Shown here piece by piece: positions 45,888 through 61,384 of a stretch of 64,000 nucleotides of DNA. The notes under the pieces are model-generated. The model was not told the DNA's origin and did not search any database. It saw only the letters and a program-made list of their open reading frames with translations. Each line of letters begins with the position of its first letter. Within the stretch, counting starts at the first letter, position 1. The position numbers and the translations under genes were made by a program. The DNA comes from Dimorphilus gyrociliatus (Eukaryota > Animalia > Annelida): NCBI GenBank assembly GCA_904063045.1, contig CAJFCJ010000001.1, positions 2,294,001 through 2,358,000 of the forward strand. The letters are read 5' to 3'.

Positions 45888-47353
45888 ATGGTTAACGATA
45901 AAGGAGAAAAGAGTGTATTTTACTTATCTTCACATTCCCAGTCCGAAAAAATGATGGATAAAGAAAATTTAACTGATGAAAGTGTAAAATTTGAAAAAAA
46001 TCCTATCCAAGAACCAAAAACTCTTAAAAAAGAGGAATTAAAGATTTGGAAATTCCATCCTATAGTCATATTGATTTCAGCTACTATTATCGAATCTATA
46101 AGTTCCTGCATGTTCTCTGCTTATGGTATTCTAATGCTAGCTATTGTTGACGCTACTGGAGAGAGAACTGGCTATATATCTTGGTTTGGGGGTATAGCGG
46201 GTTTTTCAATGGGGGTTTCTTCAGTATTAGTTGGAACTCTAATCGAGGTGCTGGGTTGCAGAGTTGTTATTGCTATTGGCGCATTAATATTCGTTGCTGG
46301 ACATGTCTTTTGCGCTTTTACTAGCAATACACTGATGCTCATAATTGTACTAGGCTTAAGTCAAGGACTAGGAACTTCTTGCTTATATATCACACCTTAC
46401 GTCATAGTAGCCCAGTGGTTTGATAGAAAGAGATCTGTTGCCTTGTCAGTTGTCTCTTTTGGTATGGGATTCGGTATGTTAGCTTGGAGCCCTATAGCCG
46501 CTTTTTTCATAGATATGTACTTCTGGAGAGGTGCACTATTAATTATTGCAGGGATTTTTTTGAATGGTATGGTTTTAGGACTCTTGCTCATTCAACCTCC
46601 AAGTACAAAGCCCAAAAAGATGTTGGATGCGAAACAGGGTTTCATTAAATTGTTTGATAGGAGATTGCTGAGAAATAAAGAATTTATTTTCGTAATGTTT
46701 GCCTTTTTGTTTGTATTTTTTGGACATAATTCTATATACGCATTCTTACCCAAAAGAACTGCTGATTTTGGAACATCTAGAGTTCAAGCATCCCTTACAA
46801 TTACTTTTGCTAATATTGTATCGTGTATTTGTAGATTGTTGATAGGTTTTTTGACAGAACTAAAATACTTTGACAAAATGGTCATGTTTATATTATCGAT
46901 ATTTGTGGCCGGTGTATCAACCATAATGACCATATTTGTTGAAAATTTCATAGGGATTTCACTATATGCTGCAGGATTTGGATGTGCTACAGGTATTCTT
47001 CTCCAGATACATATATTTTGTCAACTAACTTAATTATTTACCAACCATCCTTCTTTGCAGGAGTTTATATTGCTATGAATATTCCAGTTTTAATAAAATT
47101 ATGCGGAACGGAATTTGTTTCCCAAACAACCGGATGGAATATGTTTATTGCGGGTCTTGCATTAACAACCGCAAGAACAATAAGTGGTTGGATGTACGAC
47201 ATAACAAATGATTCCTCAGTATGTTTCGTATTGGCTGGATGTACACTAATATTCGGAAGTATTTTGCTATCTATTGTATGGATTAATCGGAGATTTTTTA
47301 AAGAGAAGAAAGAACTTATTATATCTTCTACAGTCGTCTCGAAGATAATTTAA
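45888..47353 (+). CDS. MFS monocarboxylate-transporter-like (SLC16) paralog 1; intron 46993-47060
   Basis: Twelve-TM MFS pattern with QWFDRKRSVAL, YFWRGALLI and GWMYDIT motifs. Confidence 0.88.
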
Positions 47354-47809
47354 TGCACTTAAAGTACAATTCTTATTGTCTTTTTCTCTCGTTCAATCTC
47401 TTATACTCTAGGGAAAAGATTTCCTTTTATATTTCTTACCCTATTTATCATGTGCATATCAATAACTTTTTCTATCAAAGAAATCTATTTATTTCTCTAT
47501 TCTGAGTTAAAAGTTTATCTTCCAAGTTGGTGTTTTTTAATAAATTTCAGTTTCCAATTGTTCAATATTCGTTTCTTCTTTTTGAAATTAATTATTCAAA
47601 TATCATTCGTCGGTGTTAGAAAATTTTTATACCGCATTAAAAAGAGAGATAGAAATTTTAAAGCAATTTATATGTAATACTACAAGGATTTTTATTGATA
47701 GTTACTAGATATTTGCATAATTTATGAATACTTCCGCTTGTTGAAGGTTCAATATGAAGGACATTCAGATAAATATATTTGACTGTAGAGAAGCAAAGAT
47801 ATTTTTGAG

Positions 47810-49186
47810 ATGAGTAGTAAAGTTTTTGTTTTAAGTAAGGATAATGGAATGAAAATACCTGAAGACAAATTAATTAGAGTAGATGAAAATGTTAAGAGGT
47901 ACGCTTATGTAATTCTTGTATTATCGTTTACCTTACAAGCCCTGAGTGGTTGTATGTTTTCGACTTATGGTGTCCTATTGGTTAATATTGCGGACTCAAC
48001 CGAAGTCAATACTGGTTTTATTTCTTGGTTTGGAGGCATAGCTAGTCTTAGCTTAGGTTTATCATCAGTGTCTACTGGGATTATGATTGATCTTTTCGGT
48101 AGTAAAATAACAGTGTTCATTGGAGCTATAATTTTCCTTTTGGGACATGTTGTTTGTGCGTTTGTTAATAATTTGTATGTTGTGATTATTATCCTAGGTC
48201 TTAGCCAAGGATACGGAACGTCTGCATTTCAGGTTACTTCTTTCATAATAACAACAAGATGGTTTACTAAGAGAAGATCATTTGCACTATCATTCCTTGC
48301 CGGAGGTTTGGGATTGGGTATGCTCTCATGGGGCCCATTAGCTGCCTATCTTGCAGATATATACGGCTGGAGGGGAACTTTACTCTTACTTGGTGCTATA
48401 TTTTCAAATGGTGCTTTTTTGGCTATGTTATTAAAAGAACCAAGGGAAACGCTTAAAACCAATGCGCTTAGTATAAAACAAACAATCTTGAAGCTCTTCA
48501 ATAAAGAACTAACTAGAAGTCTTCTGTTTTTTACGTATATTTCAGTTATAGGTTTTGTTCATTTTAGCTACAACGTTCTTATTGCATTATTACCAAGAAA
48601 GATTGTTGACATGGGTGGTTCGAATCTATTAGGCGGTTTAATGATAACTATAGTAACCGGATCATCGACAGTTTTAAGATTTATTGTTGGAGTGTGTGCG
48701 GACAAACCTTATTTTAATACCCTATTTATATATCTAACATCAGTACTTGTTGCTGGAATATCATCAATTTGTACAATGTTTATACCGAATGTATTTGGTT
48801 TTATAGTTTTTGCTGTTATTTTTGGTTCATCATCCGGTAAAATTCAATATTTCTTAATTCCGCTAAAAGGTTATAAGTTTATTAATAATTTATTTTTTTT
48901 ATTAGGTATATTCATTGCTTTAAATATTCCATTACCCATACAAATATTCGGTGTAAAATGGGTGTCGCATGTTACGTCATGGAATATACTTGTTATTGGA
49001 CTCTTCTCATCAGTTTCACGAACGTTAAGTGGCCGTATATACGACTTAACAAATAATGCTACTATATGTTTTGTATTTAGTGGATTTGTACAAATTGTTG
49101 CTGCTGTCTTAATACTTATAGTAATTATATTAATTAGAAAGAAAAAAAATATGAATAACGTTATTAATGACAGGCCTTTAGAATGA
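47810..49186 (+). CDS. SLC16-like paralog 2; probable in-frame intron 48837-48905
   Basis: RWFTKRRSFAL, YGWRGTLL and GRIYDLT motifs. A GT-AG intron sits at the same codon position as in paralog 1. Confidence 0.88.
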   Translation: MSSKVFVLSKDNGMKIPEDKLIRVDENVKRYAYVILVLSFTLQALSGCMFSTYGVLLVNIADSTEVNTGFISWFGGIASLSLGLSSVSTGIMIDLFGSKITVFIGAIIFLLGHVVCAFVNNLYVVIIILGLSQGYGTSAFQVTSFIITTRWFTKRRSFALSFLAGGLGLGMLSWGPLAAYLADIYGWRGTLLLLGAIFSNGAFLAMLLKEPRETLKTNALSIKQTILKLFNKELTRSLLFFTYISVIGFVHFSYNVLIALLPRKIVDMGGSNLLGGLMITIVTGSSTVLRFIVGVCADKPYFNTLFIYLTSVLVAGISSICTMFIPNVFGFIVFAVIFGSSSGKIQYFLIPLKGYKFINNLFFLLGIFIALNIPLPIQIFGVKWVSHVTSWNILVIGLFSSVSRTLSGRIYDLTNNATICFVFSGFVQIVAAVLILIVIILIRKKKNMNNVINDRPLE

Positions 49187-49598
49187 TATCAGTATTAAAG
49201 AGCAAAATATTATATATTCTTCGATTAATAAATTATACTAAAATTGTACGAAAAACCTGTCACTTGGCCGGATAAAATGTTAATAATTTGTAAATTTTAC
49301 GTAATTTAAATCAAACAATTAGAATTTGATGGAGTATCTAAATATTAACTTTCAAACATTGGGTAATTTATATTATTTAAAGATTAAATTATGTTAACAA
49401 GTAGGTATCTTGATAAAAAAGGAAATTGATATAAAAAGATTAATCATTTAAGACTCTGTAGTCGAACTGAAAAAATTGATTACAATTAGAAATTTAAAGA
49501 GTACTTTGGATTATTTTTTTTTAGAGATAAGGAGATAGAATAATAAAAAAAGTTAAATTAAAAAACTGGTGGAAAAGGTGGAAAAGAGGATAAAAATT

Positions 49599-50981
49599 AT
49601 GGAAAATGGTAAATCTGAAGAGTGCAATGTTGAAATAATTTCAACAAATATTAAAGTAAATGGCGAAAGTGATAAAGTATTTAAAGCTACTGAATTGAAT
49701 GCTGCTAAAATTTGTTGTGAACGAAAGGAAACTGCTAAATTAAATGGACTAAGAAGTAGTAAATATCGATATGTTATACTTATTAGTTCAACTTTAATAC
49801 AAGGACTTAGTGCGTGTCTTTTTTCTTGCTATGGAATATTATTAATGGCTATTGTTGAAGCTACTGGACAATCGAATGCCCTCGTATCATGGTTTGGTGG
49901 TTTATGGTCACTATTACTTGGATTTTCTTCACTCTTTATAGGACCTCTTGCCGTTTATTATGGAAGTCGGAAAGTTGTTATGTTTGGTTCTTTAGTCTCT
50001 GCTGCTGGATTTGTAATGAGCGCCTTTGCCCCCAATATGCTAATAGTAGTAATTGGAATGGGAGCTTTTCAAGGAATTGGGACGAGTTGCTATCAGATAG
50101 CACCGTTTCTTATCACTTCTAAGTGGTTTGTAGAAAGGCGAGGGGGAGCTTTATCATTTCTTTCCTTTGGAGTTGGAATAGGAATGTTACTTTGGAGTCC
50201 TCTTATCGCACTTCTTATCGAAGCCTATACGTGGAGGGGTGCTCTTCTCCTGATGGGAGCTATCTATCTCAACGGTTTAGTATTAGGTTTGCTCCTAATC
50301 GAACCGACTAATGACAAAGAGACAGCTCCGTTGTCTTTAATAAAAGCCATAGGTAGAAATCTTGATAAAAAACTTGTACGGACAAAAAATTTCTTTATTT
50401 ATTTGTCCGGTACGAGCTTGCTCTATTTCGGGCATATGATGGTTTTGGCATATTTACCCAGGAAGATCGTTGAAATTGGCAGAAGTCGTGTGGAAGGTTC
50501 ATTAATGGTGACTGTCACTAGCGCTGTTTCGTGTTTAATAAGATTGGTTATAGGAGCAATTGCGCACAAAAAATATTTCAAACAGGGCATAATATACTCA
50601 CTAAGTTCAATTATGGCTGGCATTGGTTCTTTTCTTACCTTAAGCTCAGACTCCCTTGGCTTTTACTATGCATATTCAGCGATATTCGGATTGACCTCAG
50701 GATGTTACGTTGCCCTAACGGTACCCACCGCAGTTGAAGTATTTGAAGTAAAGTACTTGGCTAATATAACTGCTTGGTCACTATTGCTTGCTGGAGTATT
50801 TATGATGGGTTCAACGACAATTGGTGGTTGGTTATACGATTTAACAGGAAATGCAACGTATAATTTCTTACTTGGCGGAGTAGCTATGTTCATAGCTGGC
50901 TTATTCATCGTGCTGTTAATGTCAAATCTAAAGAAAAAAAAGAAAGAGAGAAGAGCTTCAATTACTCTGACAACAAAATGA
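49599..50981 (+). CDS. SLC16-like paralog 3 (intronless CDS)
   Basis: KWFVERRGGAL, YTWRGALL and GWLYDLTG motifs. First ATG is at 49599. Confidence 0.88.
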   Translation: MENGKSEECNVEIISTNIKVNGESDKVFKATELNAAKICCERKETAKLNGLRSSKYRYVILISSTLIQGLSACLFSCYGILLMAIVEATGQSNALVSWFGGLWSLLLGFSSLFIGPLAVYYGSRKVVMFGSLVSAAGFVMSAFAPNMLIVVIGMGAFQGIGTSCYQIAPFLITSKWFVERRGGALSFLSFGVGIGMLLWSPLIALLIEAYTWRGALLLMGAIYLNGLVLGLLLIEPTNDKETAPLSLIKAIGRNLDKKLVRTKNFFIYLSGTSLLYFGHMMVLAYLPRKIVEIGRSRVEGSLMVTVTSAVSCLIRLVIGAIAHKKYFKQGIIYSLSSIMAGIGSFLTLSSDSLGFYYAYSAIFGLTSGCYVALTVPTAVEVFEVKYLANITAWSLLLAGVFMMGSTTIGGWLYDLTGNATYNFLLGGVAMFIAGLFIVLLMSNLKKKKKERRASITLTTK

Positions 50982-51553: not shown

Positions 51554-52483
51554 ATGAGTAACAACATCACTCTTAAGAGTAAGTATAATTTAAAAAACTT
51601 TATATTTTATGGAAAATATGAAGAGTATCCTTGGAAAAAATATGGAGTCATTAGTTTGATATTTTTTGAAATTGGACTTATTCTTCTTTTCAATATGATA
51701 TTGTTACTATTTATTAAAAAATCAGTGGAGTTACGGGAGCATATCTACTATTTATTAGCAAATTTAAGCTTTTGTGATATTCTTATATCTATTAGTGGTA
51801 TTTGCTTTCCAGCATCTGTTTTTGAAAAATTACATCCAAAGATTTGTTTGCCATGTGCTTGCGTACAAACTTTATCTGTTTCAGAGTCAATAATTACTTT
51901 TAACGTAATAGCAATCTATTTCTTTATTCATATAAAATATCCCTTGAAATTCAATCAAATTGTTACAAGTAAATTTATCTTATTCTTTATGATCGGATCT
52001 TGGAGTATCTGTATTATTTTAGTTGGGGCATTTTCTATACAATTTAGAAATTATATGGAGCTATCAACTATATGTCTAGGATCTACCGGCTATGTACCTC
52101 ACTCAATTTTTAAAGTCTTTAGCCTAGTGCTTATTCTGTCTATGTATGTGATAAATGTTATGATATTTAGCTACATTATATATATTGTTAATAAACAAAG
52201 AAGATCTATAAGGGCGCATACGGACAATGAAAAATTGAATAAGAATTATTTTGAATTATTCAAAGTTTTATTAAAAATGTTTGGTTCATCTTTACTACTA
52301 CCTCTACCCTATTTTATATTCACTAATAGGAACAGCGAAAAGGATCATATAGAAACTTGGGAGTACTTTTACTTCGACATTTGTGCATGTCTATTGTTGC
52401 TTAATTCCGTTTTAAATCCCGTGTTTTTCTTCTCAAGACATGGTGGATTTAAAGTTGTATTTAAAAAAGTACTTGTTAATTAA
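51554..52483 (+). CDS. Divergent class A GPCR (orphan, 309 aa, intronless)
   Basis: Seven hydrophobic segments, LANLSFCD (TM2), IHIKYPLKF after TM3, NSVLNPVFF (TM7). Confidence 0.8.
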   Translation: MSNNITLKSKYNLKNFIFYGKYEEYPWKKYGVISLIFFEIGLILLFNMILLLFIKKSVELREHIYYLLANLSFCDILISISGICFPASVFEKLHPKICLPCACVQTLSVSESIITFNVIAIYFFIHIKYPLKFNQIVTSKFILFFMIGSWSICIILVGAFSIQFRNYMELSTICLGSTGYVPHSIFKVFSLVLILSMYVINVMIFSYIIYIVNKQRRSIRAHTDNEKLNKNYFELFKVLLKMFGSSLLLPLPYFIFTNRNSEKDHIETWEYFYFDICACLLLLNSVLNPVFFFSRHGGFKVVFKKVLVN

Positions 52484-55085: not shown

Positions 55086-55337
55086 CTATCTCTTCTTCTT
55101 TACCGAACCCATAGAGAATTGTCTTGTTAACATTGAACCACCTGATTTATTAGAACCGGTTGAATCGTGAGTTGGGGAAGGGGGTCTTGCCCAGGCGGGA
55201 GGAGAGAATGGAGGCGGTGGAGCATTTTGATCCTTTTTGTCTCTTCTAATACTTCTTTGAGACATATTTCTTTTCTTTACTCCTGTTTGGACATTTGATC
55301 CTGGTGAGTCGAAACAAACGCTCAGCAACTTTCCCAT
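55086..55337 (-). CDS. Candidate 83-aa microprotein (or first exon) with MGxxxS-x-C N-terminus and proline-rich segment
   Basis: Higher-GC island in AT-rich DNA, good Kozak context (AGAATGG), MGKLLSVC start, PPPPFSPP segment and KKKR end. No family recognised. Confidence 0.5.
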   Translation of the reverse strand: MGKLLSVCFDSPGSNVQTGVKKRNMSQRSIRRDKKDQNAPPPPFSPPAWARPPSPTHDSTGSNKSGGSMLTRQFSMGSVKKKR

Positions 55338-56967
55338 TCTGTCGAATGACGCCTATAGGCGTTCACTAAATTATTGAAGAGGACGAACGTCGCTTATTGG
55401 TTGAATCGGCCCTGTAGTGGGGCTATTAAATGATTAAAGAGTTTTGAGGTGGTCGATTTTTCACATGATCTAGATTTATCTTTGATGTTGATCAAGGGCA
55501 TGAAAATTCTTGTTATCTAACTGTTTTGCTTGGATTATTTCATAAAAAAATACAGGTAAACAGAAGAAAGAAAAGAAACTGATTAGTTTGTCATTTATTC
55601 CGTATCGAATAATATTATTCGATTTGTATTTACTTATTCATATAACAAATGAACATTTCAAACTCTATATGACTGTTATGAATTGCCTTTTTACTCATCA
55701 TAGAAAATAGAGATTTTATAAATAGGTTGTTTATATAACTTACCAGTTTTTTGACAAAAACACAAATTATGACAAAAGTACGGTATTATTAATTTTAAAT
55801 ATTAGAAGTTAGTAGTAATAATAATTAATAGAACTAATCAACTTTTATACTCTTAATATATAAAAAGAGACAAAGGTAATAAAGGAAAAAACTTACGAAA
55901 AAAACTTAAATACGCCTAGTCTTCAATAAAATTATTTAATTTCTATTTTTTATTGTTTTTTTAAAAAAAAAATTCATAAATCAAACAAATAAACTTATGT
56001 TTAATAATTTTAATGTAAGTAAGTAACTTTTAAAAACTGATATTGCCTTGTAAATAATTTAATAACTTTGTCTAAAAGAGAACAAAGTATGTAAGTATTA
56101 ACATTTGAATTTGAGCAGATAAGTACATTCTCTTCGGACTTCTTTGACATCGCTCCTTACGAAATGAATTTAGCGAAGAGGAGAGTTTTTTTTCTATTGC
56201 TATTACAAGGAAATAAATACTTAAAAATAGTTCTCATATATAATTCATTATATTTGAAATAAATAGAATACACGGAATAAGCTTCTTGACCTCACCACTC
56301 CCCTCCTTCCCCAATCATGATATAATTTTGATATATAGTATATATATATATACATATATGTGTCATACGTTCTTAACGCTCCTCTGTCCTATATTTCGGC
56401 TAGCTATATAATCGTATTCAGCGCATAAATCATTCGATTTAAGCCTATGTAAATCACGTGATTCGGCCTAAACAATATTCGTCAAACGAAGCGAACTTTG
56501 TTATTCGCGATAACATACAGTCTTCAAAAAGGCAGAATTTTGTTTAGTTTGAACTTTGTAACTTAGAATTGGTGCGAATTCGTATCAGAACCTTAATTTG
56601 TATGGGATGAGCGGTAATAATTTATTAAATATAACGTTTAAACGTTAACAATTTAATAAGATCATTTATGTATTTAATTAAATGTCTTCTTTCGTTTTTT
56701 TTGTGTTATTATTATCTTTTCTATCTCTATATAATTTTCTATATATTGCGTATTTTTTTCTCTTTCTCCTTTCTAGTATTATTTCTAGAGAAATGTATAT
56801 AAATAATAGATTATTGTATGACATATCTTCTGTTATATATCGTGAATTTTACACATGAATGTCTATGTTAAATCTACATATTTAATAATAAGATATACTG
56901 TAGATATATCTATATATACGTTACCAAACTCATTCTATCTGCTATTGTTTTTCTCTCAACATTATAG

Positions 56968-59900
56968 ACAACGAAAATCAACCTTGTCAAATATGTGTCG
57001 ACGTCGGTTCTGGTTATCACTATGGTGTATGGAGTTGTGAAGGATGTAAGGCGTTTTTTAAACGTTCAATGCAGGGTACGTAATAGATTTATGATTATTA
57101 ATAAAAACATCATCAATATATATATATGATTCCTTTTCACTTTGGCGTTAACGAATAATATTCGAAGTCAATGTAAATGAATCGTATAAAAGGAATATAT
57201 ATATATTTATATATTAACCTCTCATAAATTGCTCTGTAATTAATACTTTAAAATCCTTTTATTAATCATCTAATTGGCAAAAAAACAATATATCTATATA
57301 TATTCCATATTTTCTACTCTATTTACCATTTTTCTTTGGAAAGAAAAGTAATCATGATGTTTATACAATCTACACATGTGTTCTTCTATTTATCATATTA
57401 TTTTATAGAAAAAAAGAAAAGCATAAAAAATAACCAAAAATTATCATTACTAAGATAGCAATGTAAATATTCTTAATTTATACATGTGTTTATAAACAAA
57501 TTTTAATACTTTAATCGAAATTATATAACCAAATATAATTCAATATTAATTTTCGTATTTAATTACGAAAATAATTATACATTTATAAAAATATTTTTTT
57601 TTATAAAATATTTTTGTTCCTTTTAAAGGAAAAATATTTAGTTTTGCTCAAAAGACCATAAATACTCAATTAGTTAGTTCTACATAAAAAAAATTCCTAA
57701 GAGTATTATTCAAATTTGACCTAATTTCATAGATATAGATGTGTACATATACTAAATATTATACCTATAATATTGAAGACTAAGCTTTTTTATTACAAAT
57801 TAGCCTATGAAAACCTCCTTAATTATTCGTAATTAGTTTAAAAAAAGGAAAGAATATCAACCTAACAAGTTATATAGGACCAATTGATAATAATTTTGAT
57901 ATTTTAATATAATACTCTATATAAAGAATTGATTGATTTAGACAGTACTTAGATGGTTAAATCTCTTTAGTAATTTCCTATCTAAAGTAGAAAATATAAT
58001 TGTTTAGTTATTCTAATCCTATTTCCTCTTATTAGCAAGACAAAAAATAGAGAAACCTGTTAAATCTCAACAAATAACGAAAAAAAAGTTTCTAATATAG
58101 GCCAAATTTCATTGACGTAGAGCTATAGTAATCACGTGAGTGATTTTTTTTGTCTGGCAAAAAAAAAAGAAATCCATGTAGGACACATTGATCAAGTTTG
58201 TTAAGAAAGTTGAGAAATTCTGTACAGTATAAGTGTTTCGAGAGTAGCGAACAGAAAGAGATAAAATCTCTAATACAAAGCGTGTTTTAAATTAAAGAAA
58301 TAATGAAACTCCGTTAGATATAGGCAATCTACAATATGAATACATGTGCAAAAGCTTTTGTCGCTCCATCCTCTTATCTTCTATCAGAACGATAAGATAT
58401 TTCAAGAACTCCCTATCTCTTAAGGAGATATTTTTTCTGAATCGGAAACTTTTTTTTTTGTTTTTTAGATATCTTATTTAATTGGTTTTTTCTTATATAG
58501 GATCTCACGATTATGTTTGCCCTGCGACAAACAATTGCACCATTGATAGGAATAGACGAAAGAGCTGTCAAGCTTGTCGATTTAGTAAATGCGTTGTTCT
58601 CGGTATGGCCGATCATTATACAAAGAAAGAAAGGAGGAGGAGGAGAAAGAAACGTAAACCAAATGAAGAAGAACCGACCGTTAGTAAAGTTAAAAAAGAA
58701 GAAGCCGACACACCTTTAAACAGCGTTAAAACTATTCTAGCAAGGGATGAAGAAGGTATTTATTCAGAACAGTGAAGATATCTGTTTTTCCCTTTATTTT
58801 GAATTCTAATCAAATAATTAGAAAATTTTGCCTATAAAAAATATTTACAAAGAAAGAAAGAAAGCATACCCCCCCTATTCCATTGAGTGACATTTTTATT
58901 GACGGAATTATTAAAGTTCTTAAATGTTATAGCTATTCTAAGAAAGGTTTCAAGGGCTTTCTTTTTTTAAAATAGTTCTACAAATGTTCAATAAAGCAAA
59001 ACAGATCTAACCGCAAAAGAATTTCAGTTGTAGTAAAGAAGGACAAAGGGAGAGAACAAAGGAGAGATTTACGAAGCTAAAATTTCCTAGTATAATTCAA
59101 TTTTTATTTAGGTTATGATACTAAAGTCGTAGGTTTTATTAACATAAATTATTTTATCTAATGGATTTTTACTACTACTTTGGCAAATATCTTGGGCGTT
59201 AATTAATCATAGCCCCTTTCCTCTTAAAAAAAAAAAAGAAAATAGAATTCGAAAAGGTTGCAATAAAGAGGAAAGATCGGTAAGGGAAAATAGGTAAATG
59301 TCACCTTTGTACACTGACGACAGATGTAAAAAAAGTAATGCGTGCTTTTTATAGTCGACCTTGATTATTTAATGATAAGATAATAATAAAAAAAAAAACG
59401 AAAGAGAGAAGGAAAAAACTAATATTTATGAAATTTGCGTTTCCTTATAGTAAAGAATGAGTTTATTATTCTTCTTTTCTCTTTTATTATTATTATTATC
59501 ATTATAATCAAACATTAACGAATTAAGTAGCTTTATTTTGAACGAAACGTATCTTGTTCAAGGTTTTTCTTTTTTTTTCTCCTTTTTTGGGAATTAGCTT
59601 TCCTTTTGATGTTAACCTCTGGACGAATAGAGAAATAATTAATAAATAATTAGATTATAGAGAGTTTACTGGATGAAAAACTTTGTAACTAGTTTTATTA
59701 TTATTGTTATTATTATTATTATTAGAATAATGTATAGTAAAAGTTGTAGTATTAACGATATAGTCAATATAATATATCGTTTGTTTATGTTTGTTAATTC
59801 AAATATGTATAGTTTATATTATTAAATATTTAAGTAGTATTTTTTAAGGGAGTTGAATGATTAATAAAATTTATTAACAAATGCTTTTTTTAATGTTTTA

Positions 59901-60942
59901 CAGCTGCTAATTTCCTGGACATGCTAATTTCTATCGAACCACCTGCAAGGATGACTGAACACGATTATTCGCAGCCAACGACTGATACAGGACTAATTGC
60001 TTCTATGATTCGATTAGCGGATAAACAATTGATGGATACAATTCAATGGGCCAAAAGAATACCAGGTTATAGAAAATTGGCATTAAATGATCAGATAAAG
60101 TTACTAGATTCAGCTTGGTTAGATATACTCATCTGCGGTGTTGCTTTCAAGTCAATGGGTGTTAGCAAAAATATATTAATAATGGCGGATGATTTCCATT
60201 GGTCAAGACCTCAGGCTGATATATCAGGTGCAGGAATAGCACACGAACACATGAGAAGACTCTCAAGGAGGTATAAGACTTAACCTTTTCAATATTTGTC
60301 ATGTTTTTAATTAATTAGTTTCAATTCGAAAGGTTTGCCGATGTGGGCATTACAAAGGAGGAGAATGTTCTTTTGAGGACGATGTTTTTGTTAAATGCTG
60401 ATGCCGAAGGCTTAGAATGTGCCGAACAAGTCAGAGAAATGCACAATCTTATAATTGAAGCTCTAAAAGTAGCTACAAGACGGTCGGAGAGAACAAGAGA
60501 ACATCAGGATGATAAATACAGAAACTATATTGAGAATAGGGTTTCTCATATTTTACTCTTACTGCCACACGTCAAAAATTGCGCCAACAATTGTATGGCT
60601 CATCTTTTTGACGCTAAATACGAAGGGAAAATGCCAACTTGTGAACTCATTGAGGACATACTTCATATCCGTCTTAGACCAACAGCTACGGCCACAGCTC
60701 AGGACCAAAGTGGTCTTGCAGGAATAGCAGCTGTTCAAGGATTTGTTGGGCGAGGATATCCAGGTTTACCATTAATGACGTCGACAGCTAGCGTTCAAGC
60801 GGCATCATTGGATCTCCTAAACTCGGCTAATATATCAGCGGGTGATATTATGAATGCAAATATAAGTGCAGTTATAACTCGACAGATGGCGCCCGAGAAT
60901 ATAGCTCAAGCGCAACAGAGTTTTGGCTGGCCTAATTGTTAA
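56968..60942 (+). CDS. ESR: Estrogen-receptor-type nuclear receptor (NR3A); exons 56968-57075, 58501-58755, 59904-60270, 60333-60942; possible start mini-exon 56607-56613
   Basis: The [29 protein letters not shown]|[26 protein letters not shown] has ER-specific features ([10 protein letters not shown], TIDxNRRKS) rather than ERR features (GVAS, CEACKA, RT). The LBD signature is [14 protein letters not shown]. Confidence 0.88.
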
Positions 60943-61384
60943 ATTTAATCATTAATTAATAATAATAATAATAAAAAGGGAAAATACTAACAAAAAAAAA
61001 GTAAAAAAGCAAAACCTCAAAACTAGCAAAACAGAAATTATGAAAATTGAATGGGCTACGTTAGAAAAATTGAAAAGAAACGATCAATTTTTCACTTTTT
61101 GTTTCCTTTAAGTCAACTATGGTTTGTTGTTCCTCTCTTTTTGGTTTCTTTGACTTATGGTGCTGTTAAAGAGTAGAAGGACTTTTACACAATTTTCAAA
61201 TTGTCTGGTTAACATACGCCTTTTCCTAAGAACTTTTTATGAATTATTTTTATTTATTTATTGGACAAACGATGAAAACCAGACGAAAATATTTTTGCAT
61301 GAGAAGATTATTAAGAAATTTTCTATTTTTTTCACATATATATATATATATATAGATATAGATATATATTTAATTGTTTGAATT

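Follow-up and report, generated by a model that had tools for sequence, protein, structure and literature searches.

The receptor gene and its transcript

A nuclear receptor gene of five exons lies on the forward strand of the DNA analysed here, a window of 64,000 nucleotides from the annelid Dimorphilus gyrociliatus, whose genome is AT-rich (30% GC). It extends from 56607 to 60942 of the window, and its coding sequence of 1347 nt is translated into 448 amino acids (Table 1). The exons were assigned from the reading frames together with the splice sites, and their phases are consistent. The interval 59904-60942, in which the initial annotation described the ligand pocket of a receptor, comprises exactly the last two coding exons. 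No in-frame ATG lies between the start codon and an in-frame stop codon further upstream (TAA at 56559-61), and no further coding exons were found in the two long introns or upstream of the gene. The start region, 56602-56613, reads ATGGGATGAGCG; here an upstream ORF of two codons (ATG GGA TGA) runs into the main ATG.

Table 1. Features of the D. gyrociliatus receptor gene, with positions in the window and residue numbers of human ERalpha
Feature	Position	Strand	Remarks
Exon 1, coding part	56607..56613	+	ATG AGC G; donor GT at 56614-5
Exon 2	56968..57075	+	First zinc finger; Pfam zf-C4 9.8e-15; P-box CEGCKA at 57036-57053
Exon 3	58501..58755	+	Second zinc finger and basic hinge; Pfam zf-C4 1.1e-10
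Exon 4	59904..60270	+	LBD helices 1 to 7, including helix 3 (LADKQL) and helix 5; Pfam Hormone_recep 5.2e-11
Gln at position E353	60026..60028	+	CAA; from alignment
Leu at position L387	60128..60130	+	CTC; second switch site, unchanged
Lys at position R394	60149..60151	+	AAG; from alignment
Exon 5	60333..60942	+	LBD helices 8 to 12; F domain of about 90 amino acids; stop TAA at 60940-2
His at position H524	60601..60603	+	CAT (CMAHLF); from alignment
AF-2 core LIEDIL (human LLLEML)	60646..60663	+	From alignment; helix 231-241 of the model

All four introns are of the GT..AG type, and each of them is supported by RNA. In public, independent RNA data from 2017 (run X2), a spliced contig of 1764 nt was found that matches the gene with 0 mismatches and crosses three GT..AG introns. 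It is the deepest contig between 55400 and 61300, the part of the window that was compared with the runs, and it continues into the 3' UTR as far as 61300 or more. The joint between exons 1 and 2, 56612(+1) to 56967(+1), GT..AG, has a depth of 686 in the same run, and a spliced RNA contig connects 57074/5 with 58500/1. The splice joints of exon 3 are backed by both run X2 and run X7, a marine metatranscriptome in which one contig crosses the 58755|59904 junction. Exon 4 follows an acceptor AG at 59902-3, and the intron that separates it from exon 5 (60271-60332) has a length of 62 nt. Because the mismatch-free spliced contig covers the codons of the ligand clamp discussed below, these codons are not an assembly error.

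The receptor gene is expressed outside the laboratory by a close strain or sibling species. In coral and marine metatranscriptomes (runs X6 and X7), contigs of the gene with 1-5% differences were found at 58673-60889; on the last exon, contigs of two metatranscriptomes differ by 1-2%. The codon for the clamp Gln is not included in any of them, one ending at 60019. In a DNA run of the same organism (X8, compared with 55400-61300), C>T and G>A changes occur at hundreds of sites, with little else. The pattern resembles that of a bisulfite-converted library. The run covers the introns and flanks, but the LBD exons hardly.

By a word-based protein search, the product was identified as DgyrCDS614 of D. 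gyrociliatus. The public model of this protein (P0001) has 412 amino acids, starts at the ATG at 57069-71 (the Met of SMQG) and is without the first zinc finger. It should gain both this finger and the true start at 56607, giving 448 rather than 412 residues.

Several other genes are present in the window. At 45888-50981 the forward strand carries three Major Facilitator Superfamily genes in tandem (Pfam MFS_1, 1e-30 to 4e-38); the second and third are single ORFs, while the first extends, through an overlapping ORF, to 47353. Next comes a rhodopsin-type GPCR gene without introns (51554-52483; 7tm_1, 8e-16), which lies just upstream of the receptor gene. Between the two, an ORF of 83 amino acids (MGKLLSV...) was noted on the minus strand at 55086-55337, with a local GC peak of 0.44 and a proline-rich middle. 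It has no Pfam match and may be a small gene.

Domain architecture and predicted fold

The product has the composition of a nuclear receptor superfamily protein, since Pfam zf-C4 is found on both DNA-binding domain (DBD) exons and Hormone_recep on both ligand-binding domain (LBD) exons; exon 5 carries the C-terminal half of the latter and has PDB matches to ERR and ER. In the DBD, all eight zinc-finger cysteines are present, the second finger reads CPATNNC, and a TIDRNRRK motif is found. A DRNRRK-type motif, such as Dimorphilus has, was reported for some annelid NR3D receptors (PMC10484738). The identity of the DBD to those of the Owenia, Perinereis, Ptychodera and Priapulus ERs is 71-77%. The initial annotation, which had described this DBD as ER-type, is borne out by the P-box and by the phylogeny presented below. 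Only about 8 amino acids precede the first DBD cysteine, compared with 69 to >500 in the other ER-type proteins examined. AF-1 has no room, because the A/B domain is almost absent.

The LBD was modelled by AlphaFold from an alignment of 44 rows, with a pLDDT of 92.9, a pTM of 0.90 and a terminal helix; it should be noted that AlphaFold tends to give the active conformation irrespective of the ligand state. The top Foldseek matches of the model are agonist-bound ERbeta and ERalpha, the oyster ER and ERRgamma, with TM values of 0.85-0.94. In the AF-2 region Asp replaces the acidic clamp residue E542, and Lys362 is retained; judged from these residues, the coactivator surface looks usable.

Phylogenetic position

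In an exhaustive, profile-free comparison of exon 4 with 1.84 billion representative proteins, only the protein itself was found below 1e-30. The next match was at 1e-18, and no match had more than 40% identity. The identity of the LBD to any relative is only 26-34%, and the receptor is very divergent. The RXR-rooted trees comprise one quick tree, with 86 rows, and careful trees with 47 and 49 rows. The annelids were represented by Perinereis, Owenia and three contigs (P0002, P0005 and P0006); a word-based protein search with the LBD of the Perinereis ER returned the query alone.

In all of the trees, the Dimorphilus protein groups with the Perinereis aibuhitensis ER and the three contigs (support 99/95 and 97/94 in the careful trees). 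This group is nested in a clade of protostome ERs together with the Owenia ER, four mollusc ERs and a Priapulus ER-like protein, with support of 96/85 and 94/84 in the careful trees. Protostome ERs have been named NR3D by some authors (PMC5375646; PMC10484738). The terminal branch of Dimorphilus, 1.28-1.29 changes per column, is about four times the median of 0.30-0.34. A clade of Dimorphilus with the ketosteroid receptors (NR3C) was rejected by the AU test (p=0.022). Given this rejection and the placement among the protostome ERs, the Dimorphilus protein is therefore an annelid ER orthologue. A position outside NR3A, which the initial annotation had named as an outcome that would speak against its reading, was not obtained.

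Two other assignments were considered and rejected. For membership in NR3C the Gln of the clamp alone matches, while the P-box is CEGCKA and not CGSCKV, position 394 is Lys, position 387 is Leu, and the AU test is unfavourable. An NR3B (ERR) assignment was prompted by exon 5, for which the PDB score of ERR1 is slightly above that of ER. It was ruled out by the P-box, which is not CEACKA, and by the ERR rows, which form a separate clade at 95/93. In all, the receptor is an intact, expressed ER orthologue with an ER-type DBD and a folded LBD that includes the coactivator helix.

The ligand clamp

The best match of exon 4 among all PDB chains is the LBD of human ERalpha (phmmer, E=4e-19), and phmmer pairs LADKQL with the human LADREL, and AFKSM with VWRSM. 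Therefore, the Gln occupies the position of E353 and the Lys that of R394. The initial annotation had read both residues in the same way, and its reading agrees with this alignment as well as with the RNA contig. It had also given Leu at L387 and His at H524. Both are confirmed by a broader alignment that takes its numbering from a human-type ERalpha row. Consequently, where the estrogen-contact triad of human ERalpha is Glu353/Arg394/His524, Dimorphilus has Gln/Lys/His. This triad marks estrogen recognition, not gene orthology.

How exceptional this clamp is can be seen when the rows are sorted by their P-boxes, that is, CEGCKA for ER, CEACKA for ERR, CGSCKV for ketosteroid receptors, plus the RXR type. 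Among all sequences fetched, Glu/Arg is found in the 82 other scored CEGCKA rows, i.e., in all except those of Dimorphilus and the hemichordates. The ERR rows are nearly all Glu/Arg, while the ketosteroid receptors and the RXR rows have Gln/Arg at the 353/394 positions of the alignment. RXR binds a carboxylate at its Gln/Arg positions. In the sampled ER and ERR sequences, the Glu/Arg clamp hardly varies. All other sampled protostome ER-type sequences have it, Perinereis and Owenia included, in keeping with the contrast that the initial annotation drew with other annelid ERs. It had also considered that the Gln might prove common in estrogen-activated invertebrate ERs, but among the invertebrate ERs sampled it is not. 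Beyond that annotation, the change in the clamp is a pair, and Gln/Lys also differs from the Gln/Arg of the ketosteroid receptors. The ERs of Perinereis and Owenia share with Dimorphilus the annelid-containing clade (97-99), the CEGCKA P-box, the CPATNxC finger and His524. However, they have Glu353/Arg394, Phe404 and an A/B domain of 69 to >500 amino acids, in contrast to Gln/Lys, Met404 and about 8 amino acids in Dimorphilus.

The two sites of the ancestral specificity switch, Glu41Gln and Leu75Met, are taken here to correspond to human positions 353 and 387. In AncSR1/AncSR2, two substitutions suffice to exchange specificity for estrogens and for non-aromatized steroids (PMC6095102, which summarises Harms et al. 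2013), and E353Q and L387M are among the mutations of human ER that lower the affinity for estradiol (bioRxiv 10.1101/2025.10.28.685021). With Gln at the first site and Leu retained at the second, one of the two switch states stands on an ER DBD in Dimorphilus, as was proposed initially. The NR3C receptors (AR, PR, GR and MR) and AncSR2 likewise carry Gln at the clamp position of helix 3. They differ from Dimorphilus in their CGSCKV P-box, in Arg394, and in Met387 (Ser in one MR-like row).

Another ER with a changed clamp is that of amphioxus (Branchiostoma floridae), in which Cys replaces Arg394, Glu353 is retained and estradiol is not bound (PMC2529310). There, one residue of the triad is replaced, whereas in Dimorphilus both clamp residues are changed, and conservatively. 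The ESR1 of Branchiostoma lanceolatum (P0098) has Arg at 394 and a P-box CEGCKS in our alignment; the disagreement with the Cys reported for B. floridae reflects either a difference between the two species or a local misalignment, the branch being very long.

The same pair in acorn worms

The only other ER-type rows initially found with Gln/Lys were two isoforms of one Ptychodera flava gene. A search with the Ptychodera protein then retrieved ER-like receptors of Glandiceps talaboti and Saccoglossus kowalevskii, and all three acorn worms (P0046, P0224 and P0225) read LADRQL and CYKSM, that is, Gln/Lys. The three hemichordate proteins form a clade with support of 100/100, outside the protostome ERs. 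A grouping of Dimorphilus with the hemichordates was rejected by the AU test, with p=0.0021 for Ptychodera alone and p=0.009 for all three. Therefore, the Gln/Lys pair arose at least twice. Like Dimorphilus, the hemichordate receptors (Ptychodera flava XP_070578779) have an ER-type DBD, Gln353/Lys394 and Ala528. However, they keep Phe404 and have Gln at 524, where Dimorphilus has Met404 and His524, and they are not its close kin.

Both changes, E to Q and R to K, are conservative and need a single nucleotide each, so a chance recurrence of the pair is not very improbable. On the other hand, that Gln/Lys is kept across the sampled enteropneusts argues for a functional state and not only for decay. 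Our literature search found no paper on the ligand of the hemichordate ER-like receptors, nor any on the Dimorphilus receptor. The hemichordate Gln/Lys exception to the Glu/Arg clamp is new.

The lining of the pocket

Besides the clamp, we compared the 21 positions that we take, after structures of the 1ERE type, to line the estradiol pocket of human ERalpha. The residues of Dimorphilus are identical to the human ones at 7/21 positions, compared with 11/21 in Owenia and 11/21 in Perinereis. His524, Leu387, Leu384, Trp383, Ala350 and Leu349 are retained. Notable among the changes are F404M, M388I, L391V, G521C and M528A, together with M421A, I424A and F425H in helix 7, whose alignment (positions 421-428) is the least certain part. 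Phe at 404 occurs without exception in the remaining ER-type rows and in the aligned ketosteroid receptors. The summed side-chain volume of the lining, a crude sum of side-chain sizes rather than a measured cavity, is 217 cubic angstroms below that of human ERalpha, the lowest of all ER-type rows, whereas the mollusc ERs are 14-130 cubic angstroms above it.

The mollusc ERs offer an instructive comparison, especially that of Crassostrea gigas (PDB 4N1Y), likewise an ER orthologue of a protostome that has moved away from sensing estrogens, and among the top structural matches of the Dimorphilus model (TM up to 0.94). They keep the Glu/Arg clamp and fill the pocket by W415, F/Y at 524, F525 and F536. 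In the oyster ER, four substitutions were identified at these sites; two of them were enough for constitutive activity, and the remaining ones filled the cavity (PMC3886901). Dimorphilus is the opposite, with a changed clamp and a slimmer lining, and has A415, H524, L525 and T536 at these sites. Judged by its residues, the whole pocket has been remodelled (14/21 differ, with less side-chain bulk) but not filled.

Possible ligands and alternative explanations

We prefer the reading that the receptor has been re-tuned to another ligand, to which we would give a probability of roughly 45%, over the reading that it has become an orphan. The suggestion of the initial annotation, that it may bind a non-aromatic steroid or be ligand-independent, seems plausible, and the parallel in the hemichordates lends it weight. 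The changed Gln/Lys clamp and the remodelled pocket would have abolished classical high-affinity recognition of estradiol, and the receptor is probably not a classical high-affinity estradiol sensor. With the acidic partner removed, an unpaired Lys would be placed beside the Gln. Such an arrangement would favour a hydrogen-bond acceptor, for example a 3-oxo group, or an anionic head group. The ligand would most likely be small and lipophilic: not a phenol, but either an acidic lipid or a steroid or sterol with a 3-oxo group. That the receptor still takes a ligand is suggested because hydrogen bonding is kept in the clamp and His524, the cavity is not filled, and the pair is conserved in the acorn worms. 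We infer that it binds palindromes of the ERE type as a dimer, with its output through AF-2. However, the long branch and the low identity of the LBD would also fit relaxed constraint in an orphan receptor, and Met at the otherwise invariant F404 is not easily reconciled with re-tuning. In addition, the ketosteroid receptors pair their Gln with Arg and with Met387 (Ser in the MR-like row), and Dimorphilus matches neither.

A second explanation is, in our view, possible though less likely than the first. An estrogen-like signal may have been abandoned in a miniaturised lineage, after which the pocket drifted, and the protein may now be a ligand-independent orphan that activates or represses constitutively at ERE-like sites. 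Gln/Lys would then represent the most conservative decay of the clamp. Such a history would fit the long terminal branch, the 7/21 conserved pocket residues with Met at 404 and Ala at several positions, and the loss of the A/B domain. It would also fit Tyr537, which is Cys in Dimorphilus and also in the Owenia ER. A change of Tyr537 to Cys activates human ERalpha without ligand. Moreover, the mollusc ERs demonstrate that ER orthologues can turn ligand-independent (PMC3886901). However, the known constitutive route fills the cavity, while the lining in Dimorphilus is the least bulky of the ER-type rows and has 0/4 of the mollusc residues. Hydrogen-bonding side chains, rather than hydrophobic ones, are retained in the clamp and at His524, and the conservation of Gln/Lys across three enteropneust genera argues for a working state.

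Could the receptor still be activated by estrogens? It is orthologous to annelid ERs, of which those of Platynereis and Capitella are described in the literature, and it retains six residues of the human pocket, from His524 to Leu349. Annelid ER LBDs have been reported to be activatable by estrogens (PMC3886901), and according to Fig. S8 of another paper (PMC3499368) two of them were assayed for activation beside human ERalpha. Since Gln and Lys can each hydrogen-bond a hydroxyl, the pair might still clamp the phenolic hydroxyl, less firmly but well enough. We consider this distinctly unlikely. E353Q is listed among the mutations that lower the affinity of human ER for estradiol (bioRxiv 10.1101/2025.10.28.685021), the loss of Arg394 accompanies the lost estradiol binding of the amphioxus ER (PMC2529310), and the residues that pack around the steroid, F404, M421, I424, F425 and M528, are all changed. 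Finally, a decaying gene, or an artefact of assembly or annotation without function, as the shortened public model lacking the first zinc finger and the very divergent sequence might suggest, is highly improbable in view of the 448 open codons, the eight zinc-finger cysteines, the correctly spliced RNA at the highest contig depth on the stretch, the confident fold prediction and the 71-77% identity of the DBD to those of other invertebrate ERs.

If the preferred reading, a receptor re-tuned to another ligand, is extended to the acorn worms, Gln353/Lys394 would be a recurrent, working alternative clamp, re-tuning an ER so that it takes, in place of phenolic estrogens, a ligand whose head group is 3-oxo or acidic. 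This extension is speculative, and we hold it to be rather doubtful. If it is true, the acorn worms and Dimorphilus would each have repeated in nature, on an ER DBD, the first step of the historical switch from estrogens to ketosteroids.

Implications

Gln at the position of E353 is one of the two substitutions credited with the conversion of an estrogen receptor to a ketosteroid receptor. A natural ER orthologue that carries it allows the repeatability and contingency of this switch to be tested, in a species with a compact genome that can be cultured in the laboratory. The Gln/Lys pair of the hemichordates is a second system for such tests, independently derived and conserved. For ecotoxicology, an estrogen response should not be assumed phylum-wide for annelid ERs when the risk of endocrine disruptors is extrapolated.
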